Shown here: piece by piece, positions 24,475 to 64,000 of the stretch | Layout of the letters: the number at the start of each line of letters is the position of its first letter | How positions within the stretch are numbered: position 1 is the first letter of the stretch | From: Setoptus koraiensis | Taxonomy: Eukaryota > Animalia > Arthropoda | Direction: 5' to 3' | Length of the DNA: 64,000 nt | NCBI GenBank assembly: GCA_048013815.1 | Contig: CM106585.1 | Location: forward strand, 15,872,001 to 15,936,000 | Translations under genes and position numbers: made by a program | The notes under the pieces: model-generated | Database searches by the model: none | The model's input: only the letters and a program-made list of their open reading frames with translations | What the model was told of the DNA's origin: nothing

Positions 24475-27393
24475 ATGGAGGCCAACAAAGAGAGTGACAT
24501 TGGTCTCCAGATAGGGTCTAGAGACCAATCGATAATAGTGTATAAGAGCCTAGAAGAAGTATGCCGCAATCGGTTCGTTTATGCAACAACAATTAAGCTA
24601 AATTGTCCTCTGCTCACATCTAGAACAAATACAAGAGTGACATCATCACAGCATCAATCAGCAACAATTAATCACAAACAAATAATGCGAACACATCATC
24701 ATCACCATTTGTACAGGCAGCACAATCATGAGTGTTATAATAAGCGCAGTCTGTTATCACCATTGTTCCTAACGATGCTAATAATGTTTATTGTGGCATT
24801 CAAAATAGTCAAAGCCAACCACGATATTGAAAACAATAGATCAACAATAGACAGTCAGCAACAGCAGCAGCACCAGAGGCCCAGTTTCGAATCATATGCT
24901 CCGTCATCGGTGGACCAGTGGTCGATGTACGATAGAGACGGCCACCAAGACACCGCAGCGTCCGCGGGCGCGTTCAACAGCAACAACGAAAAGCACAACA
25001 ACGGATCCGATGTCGACCAAGCAATCATTGAACCAGTCAACTATAAGAGCAGAGAAGATGCGAAAAAGAAATCGTCGGCCAGATACCATGGGCGCACACC
25101 TCAAACGTCGTCGGCCAAAGCTGGCAATTATGACGATATGGCCAGTTCGGCAAATAAACAGCAGCAACAGCAACAGCTAGAAAGCGGTGATATATCAACT
25201 ACTTCGTCGTCTCTGGCCGACAGCGCCGGCAACGAGCAGCAACAACAGCATCAATACGGCAATTTGCAAATGCACGCCGAAACAACCTCGTCGCCCACAA
25301 TTCCAGACGATTCACCGACCAGTCTGCTGCAAGTGGACCCATCGCCGGGCTACAACGGCAAAGAGTCATCGATGGGGTTCATCGATCGGGCCAGATCGGA
25401 CCATCAACTGGCCACCGCAAGCGGTAGCGACAACACCAAGGTGAATGGCATCAATCATTATGGCAACAGTGGCGACCCGGTGGACTACACGAGGGCGACC
25501 AATCAGGAGCATGTGGACGGTAACGGCGATGCAAACACAAACGAGTCAAGCGGCACCAACATCAACAAAGCTCAACAACAACAAACCACCGACTGGGACC
25601 CCATCGACACCAACACCAAGCAAGTGCCAGCAACAAACACAGTGGCGACAACGAATCATCGCCACAAACAAACGAACAGGGATCGTCATCACGAGGTAAG
25701 CTCGGCGCAGCCCCTGATAATTTCGCACAAGGACAGAACGAACGAGCTGGTTGATTGGCAACAGCAGCAGCCACCGCATAGACAAAGCAACAAACAACAA
25801 TCCAGCGACGACTACCCAAATTTATCCGCCGACGGCGACAGTCCGACTGCCCACAAGCCAGCACATTCCAGGTATATTGGCCATGCCAGGCAATACAGTG
25901 TGTATAATGGGGCCCAAGCGCAAGAGCAGCAGCAGCCCCATTATATCGCGTCGGAGTGGCAGAATTCTCTGGACCAGGAGGCCGAAACAAACAGCAACCA
26001 CAATCAGCAGCACCACCACAGACAGGTGAAAGCGGCCTCATCGCATCACCGTCAGCAGCAGCAGCCGACATATCCGAAGGCGCTGACCGGCGTGAGTGGC
26101 GGCTTTCAGCGGTACGCGCCGTCGGGCAGTCCCAGTGTGTTGTTGTCCGCATCAAACGCCAATAGTGCCCACCATCATTCGTCGCGATACGCCGGCACCG
26201 GTGACATTGAGCTGGCCAGCGTTGCCCGCGCATCACAAACACGAGCGCCCATCGAGCAGGCGAGCGCGACGCCCCAAGACCAAGACAGCGCCCGAATGCA
26301 CGAGCAGGCCGAGCCCGCCACGGGTCCCAACTCGCCCGGCGGCACAAGCCCCAATTCGCTGGCCAGCACCGGACGAACCGGACGACCGGTCAACCGGCAA
26401 CAGATCAGATATTACCTGGTGCAGCAGCAGCCCAGTCAGCAGGCGAGCAAGCTCACGAGCAACGACAACAACAGCAACAGCGTGGTCGGCATCTTGAGGG
26501 CGCCCGCGGGCGCCCAGCACCAATCAGTGTTACATAACCAGCAGCAGCAGCGACCACAACAGGTGGCCACGTCCAGCACGCAACACATTCTGTACCACGT
26601 GCCGCTGGTGTCCGCGGCCGGCCGACTGGTCAGCGCGGGCCCGAGCGCGCCCGGCCCCCTGCTGGCCAGCTCCATCGGGCAGCTGCAGTACACCGAGAGC
26701 GGGCCCCAGCGCGTCGGTCACAGCAGCGCCTCGCCAATCAATTATGACACAGCAGCGGCACCGGGCAACCTGTTTCCGGCGTCCAGCAACAACAACAACA
26801 ACAATGCCAATCGTCAATATCGGCACTTTATGGCGCCCAAATCCCGATCAGCTGTTCACCTGGCCAAGATGAACAGGGGCGATCGGGAGCGACGAACCGA
26901 GCTTGTGTGGTCGAGCGGCGGCGGCTCCAGCAACGACCAGCTGGCGTCGCCCTCAAATCAGCAGGACGATCTCGACGATCAGCCGCAAACTATTCAGATA
27001 ACGGCCGTGCCCAATTTGGGCCTGCAGGCGCCCGGTTTCTTTGGCAACGGATTCGCCAATGGCTTCGGAAATGGCTTCGGCAACGGCCTAGTGGGCGGCT
27101 TCAACGGAATGAACGGATTCAATTTGGTGGGCACCGCGCTCGATCCAAGCGGCCGCCAGGTACTGCTGGTGAACGCGGCACCAGCGGCCCCCCAACGGCG
27201 CCTCATCGATTGGTCCGTTTGGCCCATATTGCTGGCGCTGGCCTTTCCATTGATAATAGGCGCCATGTTTGTGCCCATATTTCTAAAGAGTCTCATGTTT
27301 CTCATACAGATACTGCAAATATTGGGCCTGTTGTTGCCCGCATCGTCGGCGGCCATCACCCATCTGGCCCAGAGTCAAGTGAGCAAAACATGA
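24475..27393 (+). CDS. Large Q/N/S/H-rich low-complexity protein (972 aa) with an N-proximal signal-like segment and a C-terminal hydrophobic membrane segment; function unknown
   Basis: 2.9-kb uninterrupted ORF with hydrophobic LFLTMLIMFIVAF, GNGF repeats and WPILLALAFPLIIGAMFVPIFLKSLMFLIQILQILGLLL. The true start may be a downstream Met, and a GTGAGC donor at 27379 may replace the last codons. Confidence 0.78.
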   Translation: MEANKESDIGLQIGSRDQSIIVYKSLEEVCRNRFVYATTIKLNCPLLTSRTNTRVTSSQHQSATINHKQIMRTHHHHHLYRQHNHECYNKRSLLSPLFLTMLIMFIVAFKIVKANHDIENNRSTIDSQQQQQHQRPSFESYAPSSVDQWSMYDRDGHQDTAASAGAFNSNNEKHNNGSDVDQAIIEPVNYKSREDAKKKSSARYHGRTPQTSSAKAGNYDDMASSANKQQQQQQLESGDISTTSSSLADSAGNEQQQQHQYGNLQMHAETTSSPTIPDDSPTSLLQVDPSPGYNGKESSMGFIDRARSDHQLATASGSDNTKVNGINHYGNSGDPVDYTRATNQEHVDGNGDANTNESSGTNINKAQQQQTTDWDPIDTNTKQVPATNTVATTNHRHKQTNRDRHHEVSSAQPLIISHKDRTNELVDWQQQQPPHRQSNKQQSSDDYPNLSADGDSPTAHKPAHSRYIGHARQYSVYNGAQAQEQQQPHYIASEWQNSLDQEAETNSNHNQQHHHRQVKAASSHHRQQQQPTYPKALTGVSGGFQRYAPSGSPSVLLSASNANSAHHHSSRYAGTGDIELASVARASQTRAPIEQASATPQDQDSARMHEQAEPATGPNSPGGTSPNSLASTGRTGRPVNRQQIRYYLVQQQPSQQASKLTSNDNNSNSVVGILRAPAGAQHQSVLHNQQQQRPQQVATSSTQHILYHVPLVSAAGRLVSAGPSAPGPLLASSIGQLQYTESGPQRVGHSSASPINYDTAAAPGNLFPASSNNNNNNANRQYRHFMAPKSRSAVHLAKMNRGDRERRTELVWSSGGGSSNDQLASPSNQQDDLDDQPQTIQITAVPNLGLQAPGFFGNGFANGFGNGFGNGLVGGFNGMNGFNLVGTALDPSGRQVLLVNAAPAAPQRRLIDWSVWPILLALAFPLIIGAMFVPIFLKSLMFLIQILQILGLLLPASSAAITHLAQSQVSKT

Positions 27394-37050: not shown

Positions 37051-40000
37051 TCAATTGCACTCGAGCCCTTGCTGTTGTATGATAAGTGGCTGATGATGAT
37101 TCATTGGCGGGTGGGCTGGTGGCGCCATAGATGCGCCGATATTTTGGAACTGTTGATTTTTTAATTCGGAAAAAACCTCGGCAAAAAATGACGGATCTGA
37201 ATTAAGTTTAAGCATCTTACCACTCAACATGTTTATGATGAGCAATGTACGATCCCAGAAGTTTTCATGGTCATCTTGGTCGCACAAAAACGGCTGCAAT
37301 GGATAGGATATTTCATTGCCCATATAGGAATAAGATAAATATAAACAGGTCATGATGATCGATTGCAGTTCCTGTTCCGATCCAATATCCTCTCTAATGA
37401 GATCACGCAATAGCATGTATAAGAACACAACATTTGCTGGATTTATGAAGGCAATCTCTTGCCAGCCCTGATCCGATAGAGTACGATCGACATTACGCAA
37501 CCAATCTACCGCAATGGCCGGCTGAAAGTTTTTCAGTCTTGAGCATTTCCTCATTAAAAAGTCGCCCAGACATCTCATCAATTCTGAGGTGGAGGCCTGC
37601 ATCGTTGCCGTAAATTAGTTGTAAGTGGAACAGTGGAGTGCGGATTAGCGTTTTAGTATAGTGAGAATATGATTATAAATATTACGATTATGTGATGAAA
37701 AGAGGAGGATAAACTCACCTGTATGATGATCCGCTGATGCTGCTGTTTGGGCCTCTGAGATCGTTTTCCCGATGAGCGACAACCGTTGGTTGTGTCATTG
37801 CTCACGCTTGAGGCGCTGTTGTAATTATATTTTGGGGCTTTGTTGGTCCTGTCAACGCCATAACAATTGTCATCGTGGTCAGAGCTGTTCTTCACATTAA
37901 CAATACTGTCCACATTAACCAAATTGTGTCTTCCGTTCAATTCTGCTCTCTGATCCAAATTGTAATTCACCACCTTAGAGCCACTGTTGATGTTGTGAGC
38001 ACGGTCATTATAGTCCAAGTTGGTTCTATCTTGCAGAGGATCCACATTCATACAGGTGACACTGCTGTAAACTGACTTGTCCAGCTTTGAATTAGACGAC
38101 TTGACTGCGTTGATGTTGTTGTGGTAATTATCCATTGGTCGGATCGGATGAACTACGTAAGACGACTGATGGTGATGATGGTTGTTATGACCGGCGAGGT
38201 TGCTATTGTGATGATTATTCAAATTATTGGACAAGTGAGAAAACTTTGATGACCACGTGGGAAGTATATTATAATGGTTAATGCCGCGCTGTTTAAACTG
38301 TTGCTGGAAAGATTGTTGTTCGTGGCTTTGATTGGCAAGAGTGGCCGTCGATGACGAAGAAAACCAGTGTCCCTTGTTGAAGAAAATGGTCTTGGTCTTT
38401 TTGACTGGTTGCATTTCTTGAGCGGGCGACTGGCCCAATGAGTTGGTCCTCAGCTGGCCGTTAGCAATCGGCAATAGGTTCTTTTTATCATCTGTGGTAG
38501 CCGATTTGCCATTTTCTTGCTGGAATGGGTCCCCGCTGTTGTTAATGTTACCACAATTCACATTCATGATTGTCTTGCAATTGTTATCCAACTCTATACT
38601 ATTATTGTCGTTATTACTGTGATTGTAATAGTTGTTGCTGTTGTCAATTGTTAACAAGTCTAGCTCCTTCTTTTTAACAATATTCTCGTCTAGGGACAAT
38701 GTTTTGCATAGGACACGCTGCTGATCTTGCTGATCTTGAAACTTGTGAGCCTTATCATTAATCATCTTCTGTTGTTTCACTGATGCTTGATTTCGAGCCA
38801 CTAATTCGAGCCCAATCGGCTGACCATTGTCTTCTTCGGTTGACGTTATAACTTTGCTGTTATTATTATCATCATAACTCTCTTGCTGTTGTTTATTGAG
38901 TTGAGCCTCTTGAAAGAAACTTGAGAAGCACATGCCATTGCTTCTGGGTAATAGTTTAGTTTGTTGTTGTTGTTGATGCTGCTGCTGTTGATTGTTATTA
39001 TGTATTGCAGATATATCCGTCGTTAAATCATCATTATAACCATTGTTATTTATGTGTGCCGAATTACAACTGCTATTGCTATTGTTGGGCCGCTTGTTTT
39101 TGTTGTTATCTGGCATGTTTCGAATATTATTTATAGTCAAATCACTAACAAGTGCATTGAAGGGAATTCTCTCTTGCAAACTCCTTCGTTGATTGTAATG
39201 GTTACTGTGATGGTGATGAAAGTGATGATGATGTTGACTAGCATTTGCGTACTTACAATTGTTTCCCGTGTCCCGGTGACTATTCCGATAACTAAAGTCA
39301 CCGTGGTTTCTCTTACCATGATCGTAGATCAACGATGTGGGCGCATAAGACCAGGTGAACATTGATTGTGCGGACATGTTAGACTGTGTTGAAGAGGATG
39401 CAGTCGACGATCTATTAGATAGTTTCCATAAAATTGAGGACGACGAACTAGAGAAAGAGTCGCTTGAAGACATGGATATTGTTGACGACGATGAGGAATT
39501 GTCGTGGTTGCAAGAGTTCAATTCTTGCTTGTTCAAATTGAGCTCCAGTACTTTGTTGGATAATTCATCATTGGTGAACGATTTATTCAAGTGTCCTCCG
39601 GATTTCTGGTCTTCTGAATCATTATTAAGCATTATATCGTCAGTCGGAGCGTAGTCATTAAGCGTCCTACCTGTCGTTTTGTTGTCATTTGCATTAGTAT
39701 CGACCGTACGTGAGCGACCTTGATCGTCATCTGTCACGTCTCGTTGGCCATTTTCATCTTTCGATCGGCCACCAAACGCATCGTCACATCCTTTAAGATC
39801 ATCGTCAACGTTATCATCATGAACATCATTGTCGCCATGGTCACCACGGCCACGATTGTCGTTGTCGTCATCATCGTCATTATCAGATATGTTAGCAAAG
39901 CAGTGATTTGTGACAGTTATTGTAGGTTTAAGCGATAATCTTCTTATCTTGTTGCTTGCCTTCATCTTTGATTGTTCGATGAATTGCTGATCCTGTTGCC

Positions 40001-40505
40001 GATACTGCTGATCGGGCAAAACATCGTGCGACAACCGTCTGACAAAATTTCTATACTCGTATTGATGGTCGACATGCGTTTTATCCGGCATAACAATGTA
40101 CTCTCTTTTGACAGGTGGCTCATCTCCGATAAGATTTTCGTCCTCTTCATCATAATGGTCATCGTAATTAAAAGAATCCATTATTTGTTGGCATAGCTTA
40201 TTTCTACCAAATCTGTCAAATCTCTTGCTGAGATCCATGTCGTCCTCAAAGTGGTTGCTCCTGGCCAATTTAGCCTGGCCATTTTCATTCAATTTTCTGT
40301 CGTTGTCCGATAAGACATTCTTGAATTTTAGCAAGCGCCATATATGTTTGGTTTTGATTTTTCTGACCTGGCGACTCTTGTCTCTGATCCAGCCCCAAAG
40401 ATCGGAGGCCTTAGATTTTATTTTGCTGGCCGATCTTTTATTCGGTTGCTTCGTTGGTTTGTTACGCGACTGTTTAACGGTCACCATCTCCTCGGCGACC
40501 CTCAT
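37051..40505 (-). CDS. CDK5R1: Cyclin-dependent kinase 5 activator (p35/p39 family), about 1110 aa; exons 40505-37719 and 37596-37051
   Basis: Splicing GTGAGT (37718) to CAG (37597) rebuilds RIIIQ|[14 protein letters not shown], followed by [29 protein letters not shown] and LTCLY-type [19 protein letters not shown]. The upstream part is N/Q/D/S-rich. Confidence 0.9.
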
Positions 40506-59439: not shown

Positions 59440-60231
59440 ACACTGTTCATTAACATCAATGTGAGGATTTGTGTGAGTGTTTGCTAACTCAACAACCACA
59501 CAAACAAAATGATATAGGCGCTCAGATATTCTACACACATTAATTATAATACCTGGCAAAATAATGGACCAGTAATTCTGACAATAAAACACTAATAAAA
59601 GATACAAACCCAAGAGAGTTTATCGTAATTATTCACGGACAGCATAAATACCGTTACCCCTTTATTATTTGGCTTTCTCAATCCATTCTCTGACCTTCCA
59701 GGCTAACACTACACATTCCAGCAGATATATTTCAGCGCACAAGCAATCGTGTTCTACTTCCCACATCAACCATACAAATACGAGCCTCAACACGGCCTAC
59801 TGGCACCACCACGACAGCAGCATACAAATAAACAACATATAAATAAACAACAAGAAACCGATTGACGGCCAACACGCAAATGAGCCAACTCCCCGTTTCG
59901 AACGAAAGAGCAACAGCTACCCATGAAACAATATTAGATAGAGACAACTACGCCAGGAACTAGCTTATAAGATGGCCGGCGCTATGATTCTGGCAAGATG
60001 GTTGTGACTGTATTAATAGCGTTACCAGTTATGTCCACTTAAACTGTTCCTTTTTCTCGTTATTATCATAATAAGTTCAGTCGTTACAATTATGTTATCA
60101 TTCGTTTTGAAACACTCATTAAGGTTCAAATCAGCGAACACCAAACACCTCCACTGACATATACAATAATTTTATTCCATTAGCAATCGTCACTAGATTT
60201 TTCATCGGCCAATATTAAAAACCACAAAAAA

Positions 60232-60796
60232 ATGGTGGATCCCTCGCCAAATAACGCCAGCAAGCGAAAGAGCTCGTCATCAACAGTAGCATCTTCCACA
60301 TCCAAGAGCTACACACACAAACCGACAATACCCGCCACAAGTTCCTCCAAAACCAATAGCGAGCCACCCTTTACTAAATACTCACGCTCCCTCAACAAAT
60401 TTATCGATATGGAGCTCGTTGATATCGACCCTATTAGGGCATGGGTTAAAGCTTACCTCACTACATATCATATTCAAGATGCGCCACTCTTATACGACCT
60501 CGTGTTCGACCGGCTCACCAATGAAAAGGTAAGATTGAGTCATAGATTGTATTCCAACATGTTAAAATAACTGTTAATACCTACGTATACTATTCACAAC
60601 GCCTGTTCTAAAAACTATTGCACTAAATCTCATCTCGAGATAGTGGCCAGATCCAAAGGTCTTACAAGCAGGATTAGGCGACGTCTTCATGTTACCCTTG
60701 GATGCACGCGAATTCGTTAAACGACTGTGGTTGACGCTGACAAGTCAAATTAATCATAGAGACTCCTCGAGTCGAAAAAAGATGAGAAAAGAATAA
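60232..60796 (+). CDS. Stand-alone PWI-domain protein (SRRM1-like domain), 149 aa; exons 60232-60528 and 60644-60796
   Basis: KYSRSLNKFIDMELVDIDPIRAWV...LVFDRL|WPDPKVLQ..L..F...DAREFVKRLW aligns by eye to the SRRM1 PWI domain; GTAAGA donor and ATAG acceptor, phase 0. Confidence 0.82.
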
Positions 60797-61009
60797 TCTT
60801 TAAACTTGCTAGGCCACCGTTGTAGTGGAATCTGTAGTTATGGTCAAATGGCAAATAGACAAAACAATAAGTAACTGGTGATATCTCAGCCCCGAGTGGA
60901 AATACAAAGGATTCCTGTCACTCGATACCCTATCTAAATGCGTATGTAAATATATATATGTATATTATATATCTAGCCTTGTACATAAAAAACTCAACAT
61001 CGTGACAAT

Positions 61010-63358
61010 TCATTTGGATGAAGAGAATCCCAATCGCTGCGCAAATAATGGTTTACCTACGAACTCTTGGAGATTATCCTTGGTTACCTGAATATCCTCG
61101 ATACCCTGTTCGACGACCTGAAAAGCTGCCTTTCTCATTATCTTCTCAATGTGTTTTTGCAAGTTTCTCACTCCGCTTTCCATACAATATGTTGCAATAA
61201 TTTCATTGATAGCTTCCTCGTTCACGGAAATAGTGCCATCTTTCAATCCAGACGCAAGCCTAGCTTGAGGTATGAGATATCTCTCTGCAATGGCGAGCTT
61301 TTCTTCAGGCTTGTATCCTGATACTTCTATCATTTCCATACGGTCTTTGAGAGGTTCGGGTATAGTATCAGTATAGTTGGCGGTACATATAAATAAGACT
61401 CTAGATAGATCTATCGGAACATCTAGATAATGATCTAAGAAATTGGCGTTCTGTTCAGGGTCCAATAATTCCAGTAGCGCAGCAGATGGGTCACCTTGGT
61501 AGCCTCTTCCTATTTTGTCCACTTCATCTATTAGTACTAAAGGATTCTCAGTTTTAGTACGTTTCAAGCACTGAACAAGTTTTCCAGGCATAGCGCCGAC
61601 ATAGGTTCTTCGATGTCCCTTTATTTCAGCGACATCACTCATTCCTCCAACGCTGAAACGATAATATTGTCTGTTCAATGACTTAGCGATTGATTTAGCT
61701 ATGGAAGTTTTTCCTACTCCAGGAGGCCCATGGAAGCATAATATTTTTCCCTGAGCAGACCCCTTCAATTGACTGACTGCGATGAATTCTAATATCCTCT
61801 TCTTGACGTCTACCATACCATAATGGTCCTCATCAAGAATTTCTTTCGCAGATTTTATATCTAACGTTTCCTCACTACATTTACCCCAGGGTAGACTTGA
61901 AAGCCAATCTAAATAATTCCGTGTTACACTAAACTCTGATGAGTGGTTATCTAGAACAGACAATTTATTCATTTCTTCATTGATGATTTCCATTATGTTG
62001 GCTGGCACCACTAGTTCCTTAAGTCTACTCCTAAAGCGGTCTTCAATTGCATCTTTGTCATCTTTCTCAATGCCCAACTCTTTTTTGATTATTTTAAGTT
62101 GTTCATGTAGTAAGTATTTTCTATGTTGTGTCTTGACCTTTTCCTCTACTTCTACTCTTATCTTCTCCTGTAGTTTGGTGAGTTCATATTCTTTTTTAAG
62201 CATCGTCAGTGCCATATCTAGTCGCTCTTGTACGTCTACCTCATTCAAGAATGCTTGCAATTCATTAGTGGACGCAGCTGTGAGAGAAGCAGCCAAATCT
62301 GCAAGATGAATTGGATTATCGACAACATTTTGGCCCGTGTGTAATATTTGGGCTATAGACTCTCTATATAATGGGTTCAAAGCTATAATATCTCGTATAG
62401 TTCTAATGATTTCTTGTGTGAGAGCTTGCATTCTTTCGGATGATTCATAAGGCTTATGCTCAAGATTCTCCACTTCAACCATTAGTAAAAGATTTTTGAG
62501 ATCGTCACTTGTTGGCACGGCTTGTTGGTCTGTTGCAGTTGTGTCAGATTGAGCTTCGGACTCTTCTTGGGATTGGCCCGGCTGCTCAGATAACTTATTT
62601 TCATCTTGTAGAACTGTTTCCTCAGTTTTGCTTTCATCGGATGTTGTATCACCTGTGGAGTCCTCTTTTGCCCCTTCGACGGATTCATCGGAAATATGAC
62701 TAGCTGTCAGATTGTCATCAGCCCAATCATTTGTAATTGTTGCTGAATTTCTGGCCAGAAATTTGGATTTGTTCTTACGAAAGAATCTAGTTTTCGAGCG
62801 TGCACCATTGTTGAGGGTTGGGACTGGAGGTATATTACTCTCGTATATTTGTTTAATAATCTGAACTCTTCTGTGTGCCATGACAATCATTCGCAATTTA
62901 TCGCCCATGTCGTGTACTTCGTGTATGTGGACAAACGTTCCGACATGATGAATGTCATCTAGACTTCCGACAACTTCATTATAATTTGTATCATCTTTCT
63001 TAAGAAACACTCCAGCGTATGGCTGTCTGAGCTCCAATTTCCTTCTAATGATCTGCATTAACCCTGGATGACTGATTTCTACGAGTTTGACAAATTTGGG
63101 AAATACTGGATTCTTTGTGACAGCTATCACAGGTAAAACAGGCCATTTGTCGGGAATATTGTCGGCACTTAATTTTCCATGTGAATCGCTCTTTTGGGGA
63201 CTGACGACAACAGCTTTAGTGGACGAGTAGTATTTGATGTGTTGTTGTTGTAATCGCAAATATTGTTGTTGTTGTTGTCCTAGGGGTCTGTAATACTCAA
63301 GTAAATGCCGTGCGGGGCTCAAACAACGAAAACGGTGACACATCGAAGCCAGAGCCAT
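61010..63358 (-). CDS. LONP1: Mitochondrial Lon AAA+ protein (782 aa), intronless; reading frame ends before the protease domain
   Basis: Arg-rich targeting-like N-terminus, LON N-domain ([18 protein letters not shown]), LDEDHYG, Walker A GPPGVGKT, Walker [32 protein letters not shown] and ESGVRNL. Ends [21 protein letters not shown]-stop. Confidence 0.95.
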
Positions 63359-63927
63359 GTTGTTTTGAGATGTAGCAATGGAAATAAGAATATTATAAAG
63401 AATAGTTCCAGATCGTTGTTGTTGTCAGGCTGGCCAGTTTCTTTCGAGATGCTTCGATTTTGTCAGGGAGAATTCATTACGATCCACATACCATGTGTTT
63501 CAATTCAACGTGTTTTAGGTAGTCGGGGGTATTCTTGAGCCGACTTGGGTACTACGTGGGTACTGAACAATGGCCATGGAGTTTCTCACTGTTGAGGGTA
63601 TTTTAATTAATTAATTTCTTATCAACTCACCATTTTGGAAGATATTTTTGCTGAAGCAACTTTCTATCGAGCCGCTTGATCGATGAGATAGGATAATAGA
63701 GCGATAATTGTATGCTACCCGGCATAAATTGCCCATGTGGCCGAGGGTTTTTCTCCTGTCATAAGCTGGCATAACTGTTCACCAGGTGGCGCTGCGCAGA
63801 GAAAAGTTGGAAACTTGCGATGAAACTGTAGGTTGTTGATCAGGAAAAGAGAGTTACCGACCCCTCATGACGTTGTTTGTATCCAGGTGAGACAGAGAGA
63901 TGAAAAAACTTCTGGCTCCTCCCCTCC

Positions 63928-63947
63928 TCTCTCTCTCTCTCTCTCTC
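63928..63947. repeat. (CT)n microsatellite
   Basis: About 10 CT units preceding a TTTTCAG acceptor-like motif. Confidence 0.85.
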
Positions 63948-64000
63948 TTTTCAGTGCCAGACAACTTGTTCTAGGTTCATATTTATACTTATAAATAGAG

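Follow-up and report, generated by a model that had tools for sequence, protein, structure and literature searches.

Lon is an AAA+ protease that carries its motor and its protease on one chain, and animals other than the mites considered here need its proteolysis, which is important or essential for them. In HslU-HslV and in the proteasomal ATPases, the C-terminal tails of the ATPase insert into the peptidase. We know of no natural split of LonA and of no precedent for a Lon-family ATPase that uses ClpP, and to our knowledge HslV is not expected in animals.

Two papers (PMC8368198, PMC7801493) describe a chaperone-like function of LONP1, in folding and in preventing aggregation, that is supported by its ATPase and not by its protease. 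The ClpP-docking loops of Clp ATPases share the consensus (L/I/V)-G-(F/L) (PMC8745299), and human mitochondrial ClpX carries LGF, the Phe of which is buried in a ClpP pocket (PMC12852852). Here we analysed a 64-kb stretch of Setoptus koraiensis DNA (hereafter, the window) that encodes a truncated mitochondrial Lon, and compared this gene with its relatives.

Results

A Lon gene that ends at the AAA+/protease junction

The truncated mitochondrial Lon is encoded on the minus strand by a complete coding sequence (61010-63358; 782 aa plus a TGA stop at 61010-61012), which was delimited using the open reading frame (ORF) list, Pfam and TIGR00763. All features of the gene given below are on the same strand. 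The N-terminal ~50 residues (63209-63358), read from the translation, are Arg-rich with one acidic residue, which is consistent with the presumed presequence, and a mitochondrial location of the protein is likewise presumed. The substrate-binding N-domain spans residues 74-389 (62192-63139; PF02190, E 1.7e-28, profile positions 1-200 of 200) and contains a fast-evolving, acidic, Ser/Thr-rich insert (residues ~200-300). It is followed by the AAA+ ATPase core at residues 540-678 (61325-61741; PF00004, E 2.9e-25), which includes Walker A (61706-61729), the pore-1 loop TYVGAMPGK (61580-61606), Walker B (61514-61534), the sensor-1 CTAN (61376-61387) and the Arg finger DR (61340-61345). The AAA+ lid covers residues 703-752 (61103-61252; PF22667, E 3.5e-18; AlphaFold2 pLDDT ~88-93), with the sensor-2 GVR (61166-61174) inside it. 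Walker A and B, the pore-1 loop, sensor-1, the DR Arg finger and the sensor-2 GVR were all invariant in an alignment of 49 sequences.

The protease domain is missing from this chain. The ORF scored 761 bits against the endopeptidase La model of NCBIfam (TIGR00763; cut-off 608), matching only profile positions 1-609 of 795, and the last 186 positions (610-795) have no counterpart in it. A Pfam search of the 782-aa protein gave no Lon_C (PF05362) match. With structures of human LONP1 (7nfy among others), the phmmer alignment stops at residue 773, just past GKPLF, and the TGA stop codon lies 10 codons beyond GKPLF. The ClpX and ClpA models reached 25-28 bits, in the P-loop region only, versus 761 bits for the Lon model; judged by these profile scores, the truncated Lon does not belong to the Clp/Hsp100 or ClpX family by homology. 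The first-pass annotation of this DNA had described an unbroken 782-codon frame (61010-63358, minus strand), an intact N-domain with all AAA+ motifs, and an end at the AAA+/protease junction; the ORF list bears out the first of these, Pfam and the 49-sequence alignment the second, and Pfam, TIGR00763 and the LONP1 structure alignment the third.

The convergent neighbouring gene (60232-60796, plus strand; 149 aa) has a 115-nt GT..AG intron at ~60527-60641 and a stop codon at 60794-60796. Its spliced translation places its end exactly 213 nt from the Lon stop, i.e., the distance given in the first-pass annotation. A Pfam search with its first exon returned no match, so that its earlier label as a PWI gene is unconfirmed, and the gene is kept downstream of the Lon ortholog in another lineage (L085).

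The truncated gene is correctly assembled and transcribed

Logan contigs from four public runs were placed on positions 59500-63990 of the window. In run X2, which comes from another study, a single 3398-nt contig spans 60529-63915 with 0 differences, and two contigs of run X3 bridge the Lon stop site. As the X2 and X3 contigs are identical across the stop, an assembly error at 61000-61060 was excluded.

Runs X7 and X8 were taken as RNA-derived, a reading that comes from the contigs and not from the run records, because one contig lacks 60527-60641 (with GT..AG ends) and the coverage consists of exonic patches only. The 60526>60642 joint of the neighbouring gene is spliced in both runs. Within Lon, their contigs are colinear with the genome over 61025-61258 (X8 record 28), 61517-62076, 61722-62293 and 62671-62894, the first of these spanning position 61056, and a further contig (63153-63391) is colinear across the start codon. 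No joint and no loose end was listed for the X7 and X8 contigs in the Lon gene, at a low depth at which rare isoforms could escape. One contig (60642-61039) passes the Lon stop; as the contigs are unstranded, it may represent the 3' UTR of the neighbouring gene.

The possible splice donor that had been noted near the end of the frame, a G|GT within the V-G-K codons (61055-61057, with the boundary at 61057|61056), is present, and its use was not seen. The earlier argument that it is unused, since Lon similarity runs past it, has become stronger, as 43 sequences conserve the tail that follows the donor. The first-pass annotation had also named findings that would speak against a genuine truncation. 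The RNA-derived contigs show no splice from 61056; the assembly is unbroken, the site being bridged with 0 differences by contigs that come from independent studies; and neutral evolution is excluded by a dN/dS of 0.06 at a dS of 0.78.

One ancient truncation shared by a clade of mites

The truncated form is not restricted to the window. A protein search revealed at least 42 further proteins (577-817 aa) in which the N-domain, AAA and lid are present and Lon_C is absent, including one of 783 aa that is 90% identical to the query Lon (P0001) and one from the eriophyoid mite Aceria tosichella (A0A6G1SA24), known here from its UniRef entry alone, that ends at the equivalent junction. All truncated Lons end 4-17 residues past one common point, and the stop is shared with the ortholog of a sister species (90% amino acid identity). 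Six genomic contigs from other lineages have TGA, TAG or TAA at the end of the ORF, beyond which read-through would give only short nonsense; stop-codon recoding was rejected on these grounds, given that all three codons occur. In contig L003 the next gene, which encodes an isochorismatase on the Lon strand, begins 194 nt past the Lon stop.

The region common to all sequences (119 rows, 699 columns) was used for a maximum-likelihood tree, which was obtained with a quick search and midpoint rooting and carries a long-branch warning. In this tree the 43 truncated Lons, i.e., the query and the 42 others, form one clade with an SH-aLRT of 100, so that a single change suffices, and the query and P0001 together are sister to the remaining 41. 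This single, fully supported clade indicates an old truncation that took place once. Members of the truncated clade share 61-67% identity with the query, and the full-length Lons of other mites 56-60%; divergence within the clade is nearly as deep as that to the full-length mite Lons. The substitutions fixed in the clade were inspected for marks of the lost protease interface; the 25 sites are mostly conservative changes and show no clear clustering.

The protein search found no full-length Lon assignable to the truncated clade. Two full-length proteins were considered as eriophyoid paralogs and rejected: P0118 comes from a different JGI sample, P0039 groups with Halotydeus, and neither showed a link to the truncated clade. 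The suggestion in the first-pass annotation that the gene is a paralog is therefore unsupported, as the truncated Lon is a lineage-wide form with one origin and no full-length Lon could be assigned to its clade.

Strong constraint on the ATPase

Selection was evaluated by a Nei-Gojobori comparison with the L085 ortholog, in which the stop codon is conserved. Over the whole gene, dS was 0.78 and dN 0.047 (dN/dS 0.06). The ratio was lowest in the AAA+/lid part (0.018), remained low over the last 40 codons (0.054), and was higher in the acidic insert (0.28) and the first 70 codons (0.21). The low dN/dS and the invariant ATPase motifs together suggest an active translocating ATPase under strong constraint, and no decaying remnant.

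A conserved motif in the C-terminal tail

The ten-residue C-terminal tail (residues 773-782; 61013-61042) directly follows GKPLF. The first-pass annotation had treated these last 10 codons as mere divergence, but comparison of the 43 sequences revealed a conserved new motif. At this junction, full-length Lons read GKP-x-F-x-x-D-R-[M/L]-Y-x-x-T-P-P-G, whereas the truncated clade reads GKP-x-x-E-Q-R-[L/I/M]-G-F-K-L-S and then stops. The tripeptide [L/I/M]-G-[F/L], L-G-F in the query (residues 776-778; 61025-61033), was detected in 43 of 43 truncated Lons (LGF, n = 29; IGF, n = 10; MGF, n = 3; IGL, n = 1) and in none of the aligned full-length Lons, which have DR[M/L]Y instead. Since all truncated Lons carry the motif and the aligned full-length ones have R-[M/L]-Y, we consider it derived and fixed along with the truncation, although its hydrophobic residue and the preceding R go back to the former linker.

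When residues 479-782 were modelled with AlphaFold2 (mean pLDDT 80), the AAA+ and lid were confidently folded and the last nine residues had a pLDDT below 50, on which basis the tail is predicted to be flexible. The tail leaves the lid at the former attachment of the protease, on the exit face of the ring. Except for the three MGF tails, the tripeptides fit the (L/I/V)-G-(F/L) consensus of the Clp ATPases, here on a flexible tail. A conserved flexible tail at the exit face with a Clp-like consensus makes a docking function plausible as judged from sequence, with the three-residue match itself being a weak indication that we take as a lead only.

Searches for the protease domain

The earlier report of no protease motifs downstream of Lon was extended to the whole window using two methods. 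A regular expression for Lon_C motifs had no match in the six frames of the 64 kb, and tblastn with four mite Lon_C domains gave a best E of 0.08, which is noise, with 61 kb downstream of the gene covered. Lon_C was also not found beside the truncated Lon in L001-L004, L085, L088, L090 and L091, and, counted by lineage, none was present within ~10 kb of the truncated Lon in seven (the window and six others).

For a partner encoded elsewhere, a word-index search was performed with the Oppia nitens Lon_C as query, and the best 120 short proteins were inspected (identity floor ~55-57%). None of these 120 is a stand-alone mitochondrial-type Lon_C with its own N-terminus. Nearly all of them keep a lid/junction prefix, which marks them as parts of ordinary full-length genes, and the others start inside the Lon_C domain. 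HMMER, run exhaustively against 1.84 billion cluster representatives (50% identity), likewise revealed no stand-alone Lon_C partner among the best 150 representatives, which reach down to ~50% identity. Three short matches of this second search that are prefix-less (P0267, P0313 and P0316) were set aside, as their composition suggests other kinds of organism. A regression on 70 full-length Lons, with a weak fit (r = 0.32) and by extrapolation, predicted that a Lon_C partner evolving at the pace of the AAA+ part would be ~58-69% identical to the query. Such a partner would not fall below the ~55-57% identity floor of the word-index matches listed, and none was among them.

In a metagenome scan for Lon_C, the matches listed were dominated by bacterial Lon; three of the loci (L071, L072 and L078) are contigs of bacteria in metagenome assemblies of the human gut. 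A literature search, extended to the genome paper of Aculops lycopersici and to 200 of its 225 supplements, found no account of an eriophyoid, split or protease-less Lon. Taken on sequence grounds, the absence of a canonical Lon_C partner is mildly favoured, and the genome may have lost Lon_C completely.

Discussion

Given these results, we conclude that the truncated Lon is a real and expressed gene, that it is conserved in a monophyletic group, and that purifying selection on it is strong. As to what its product does, we give roughly an even chance to a lineage-wide LONP1 ortholog without the protease domain that works as an ATP-driven unfoldase or chaperone. An ancestor of the eriophyoid-type mites would have lost the C-terminal Ser-Lys protease domain from Lon once, long ago, leaving a protein with a presequence, a substrate-binding N-domain, an intact AAA+ translocase and the lid. 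We infer hexamer formation and unfoldase-only activity for this protein, which would most likely be hexameric. The hexamer could thread or remodel matrix proteins without cutting them, continuing the folding and anti-aggregation role of LONP1, with bulk proteolysis falling to other matrix proteases. The linker DR[M/L]Y would have been remodelled into the conserved flexible R-[L/I/M]-G-F tail at the former protease face of the ring, where it is a putative docking or regulatory element. Because Lon proteolysis is important or essential elsewhere, its complete loss would be surprising, and the combination of a conserved pore and a new tail seems to fit a peptidase-feeding machine at least as well as a pure chaperone.

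Three other explanations were weighed. The truncation might be an artefact or mark a dying gene, i.e., a misassembly, a protease exon far away that is reached through an unannotated intron or an alternative splice, or a pseudogene of recent origin beside an intact LONP1. We regard this as highly improbable, even though a G|GT exists at 61056 and rare isoforms are compatible with the contig data: independent assemblies are identical at the site and the RNA contigs are colinear, the equivalent end recurs in 42 other lineages (including the Aceria tosichella protein), three distinct stop codons are used at one conserved position, the 61 kb downstream hold no Lon_C, and the dN/dS is 0.06. Rather unlikely, in our judgement, is a split Lon, in which a separate nuclear gene would encode Lon_C with a presequence of its own, and the Lon_C ring, tethered by the R-[LIM]-G-F tail, would dock below the AAA+ ring by non-covalent contacts, leaving the mite with a Lon protease in two pieces. 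Such a partner was sought at several levels, and the 42 truncated N+AAA+ proteins that were found stand against 0 candidate partners, with no stand-alone Lon_C among the 120 best short proteins or the 150 best representatives, no Lon_C within 10 kb in seven lineages (window included), and no natural LonA split found by a literature keyword search. A partner that has diverged to below ~50% identity or is hidden within a cluster would nevertheless be compatible with both searches. A split would also suit the fully conserved translocation machinery and a tail that is conserved, flexible and protease-proximal, and as Lon proteolysis is, by general knowledge, important in other animals, retention of the protease is likely a priori.

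The tail motif raises the further possibility of a hybrid machine, in which [L/I/M]-G-[F/L] would plug into the hydrophobic pockets of mitochondrial ClpP in the manner of ClpX, and ClpP would degrade the substrates selected by Lon. The motif is present in 43 of 43 truncated Lons and is derived with the truncation, fits the published Clp consensus bar the three MGF tails, and is LGF in human mitochondrial ClpX; six such tails per hexamer, predicted to be flexible, would emerge at the exit face of a ring whose pore loops are conserved. Nevertheless, we consider the hybrid unlikely: a match of three residues is weak evidence, the R and the hydrophobic residue were inherited from the old linker, and the tether from lid to motif is only ~8 residues long. 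The ClpX loop is much longer than that.

Whichever explanation applies, an old, species-rich animal group that keeps the Lon motor under strong selection, and not the protease on its chain, is a natural experiment on the old question of which mitochondrial Lon functions require proteolysis and for which ATP-driven unfolding suffices. If the protease is gone, these mites would reveal the extent to which ClpXP and the membrane AAA proteases make up for it. A protease encoded at another locus would make this the first naturally two-piece LonA known to us, and would define a minimal docking interface. Should the tail bind ClpP, AAA+ motors would be able to swap peptidases in evolution; the hybrid, if true, would join the substrate choice of Lon to the ClpP chamber in a natural partner swap between two AAA+ protease families. 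The conserved tail offers an immediate experimental handle.

Comparison with known systems

By descent, the truncated Lon is an ortholog of LONP1/Pim1 (mitochondrial LonA, MEROPS S16), with which it shares the N-domain, the AAA+ motifs and the lid; its AAA+ module is 72-75% identical to that of LONP1 from other animals. In contrast to LONP1/Pim1, it has no protease domain (~190 aa, with the Ser-Lys dyad) and carries the [LIM]-G-F tail instead, and since the proteolytic domain is missing, it is by definition not an S16 peptidase. Protease-dead mutants of LONP1/Pim1 resemble it in combining ATPase and substrate binding without proteolysis, a state that was found in experiments (PMC8368198, PMC7801493) to support mitochondrial folding and to counter aggregation. 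These mutants are engineered point mutants that keep a folded protease ring, whereas the mites lost the domain across an animal superfamily.

ClpX, ClpA and ClpC belong to AAA+ families different from Lon, with both within the HCLR clade, and are comparable to the truncated Lon as putative hexameric AAA+ translocases with no peptidase on the chain and a consensus tripeptide on a flexible element. In the Clp ATPases, however, the motif is on an internal loop, whereas in the truncated Lon it is on a short C-terminal tail, and binding of ClpP by Lon is putative. With HslU-HslV and the proteasomal ATPases the likeness is one of analogy, in that the C-terminal tail of an ATPase could dock to and activate a separately encoded peptidase ring; unlike in those systems, the Lon motif is at a variable distance from the C-terminus, with 4-17 residues after it. 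By analogy with these systems, the truncated Lon may behave like a protease-dead Lon, or possibly in a ClpX-like manner.

Transcription at the 3′ end of the Lon gene

The region where Lon meets its convergent neighbour spans 60232–61039. The neighbour encodes a product of 149 aa and contains a 115-nt GT..AG intron, as confirmed by spliced contigs. A single RNA-derived contig is continuous from 60642 to 61039, spanning the entire 213-nt gap between the two genes and reaching the final Lon codons. Given this unbroken contig, we conclude that Lon and its neighbour probably share overlapping 3′ UTRs.

Additional short contigs, about 90% identical to 60347–60620, were found in the DNA runs X2 and X3. 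These differ from that stretch at 19 of 194 nt and run into unrelated sequence at both ends. A second, diverged copy covering a portion of the neighbour seems to be present at another place in the genome.

Genomic context of truncated Lon genes

Upstream of the Lon gene lies an (AG)n microsatellite (63925–63955), and in several runs the reads seem to be cut around its position (63916–63990). Two other long ORFs of the window, at 24475–27393 (plus strand, 972 aa) and 37653–40505 (minus strand, 950 aa), had no Pfam match at E ≤ 0.001; they are flanked by ordinary genes, i.e., EMP70, amidohydrolase, galactosyltransferase and acyltransferase.

Gene order near truncated Lon is partly conserved between lineages. 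A bHLH (NPAS4-type) gene lies upstream in the sister species (L085) and in L090, and a septin gene lies downstream in L001, L088 and L090. In contrast to these septin-bearing contigs, L002, L003 and L004 have an isochorismatase gene after Lon.

Comparison with full-length Lons

The last lid helix of Lon (residues ~738–748; about 61115–61147) is basic in full-length Lons (RK-A-KIV-K) and acidic in the majority of truncated ones (RKTAYEIVEE). This charge reversal sits close to the lost protease junction, and is absent from the query and the group of the homologs P0031 and P0035.

Another very compact arthropod genome, L089 (ENA contig ctg129957), is apparently intron-poor, and its LeuRS is one single ORF of 1191 aa. 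This genome has a full-length Lon of 1033 aa, which groups with that of Halotydeus, so compaction of the genome by itself is not accompanied by protease-domain loss.
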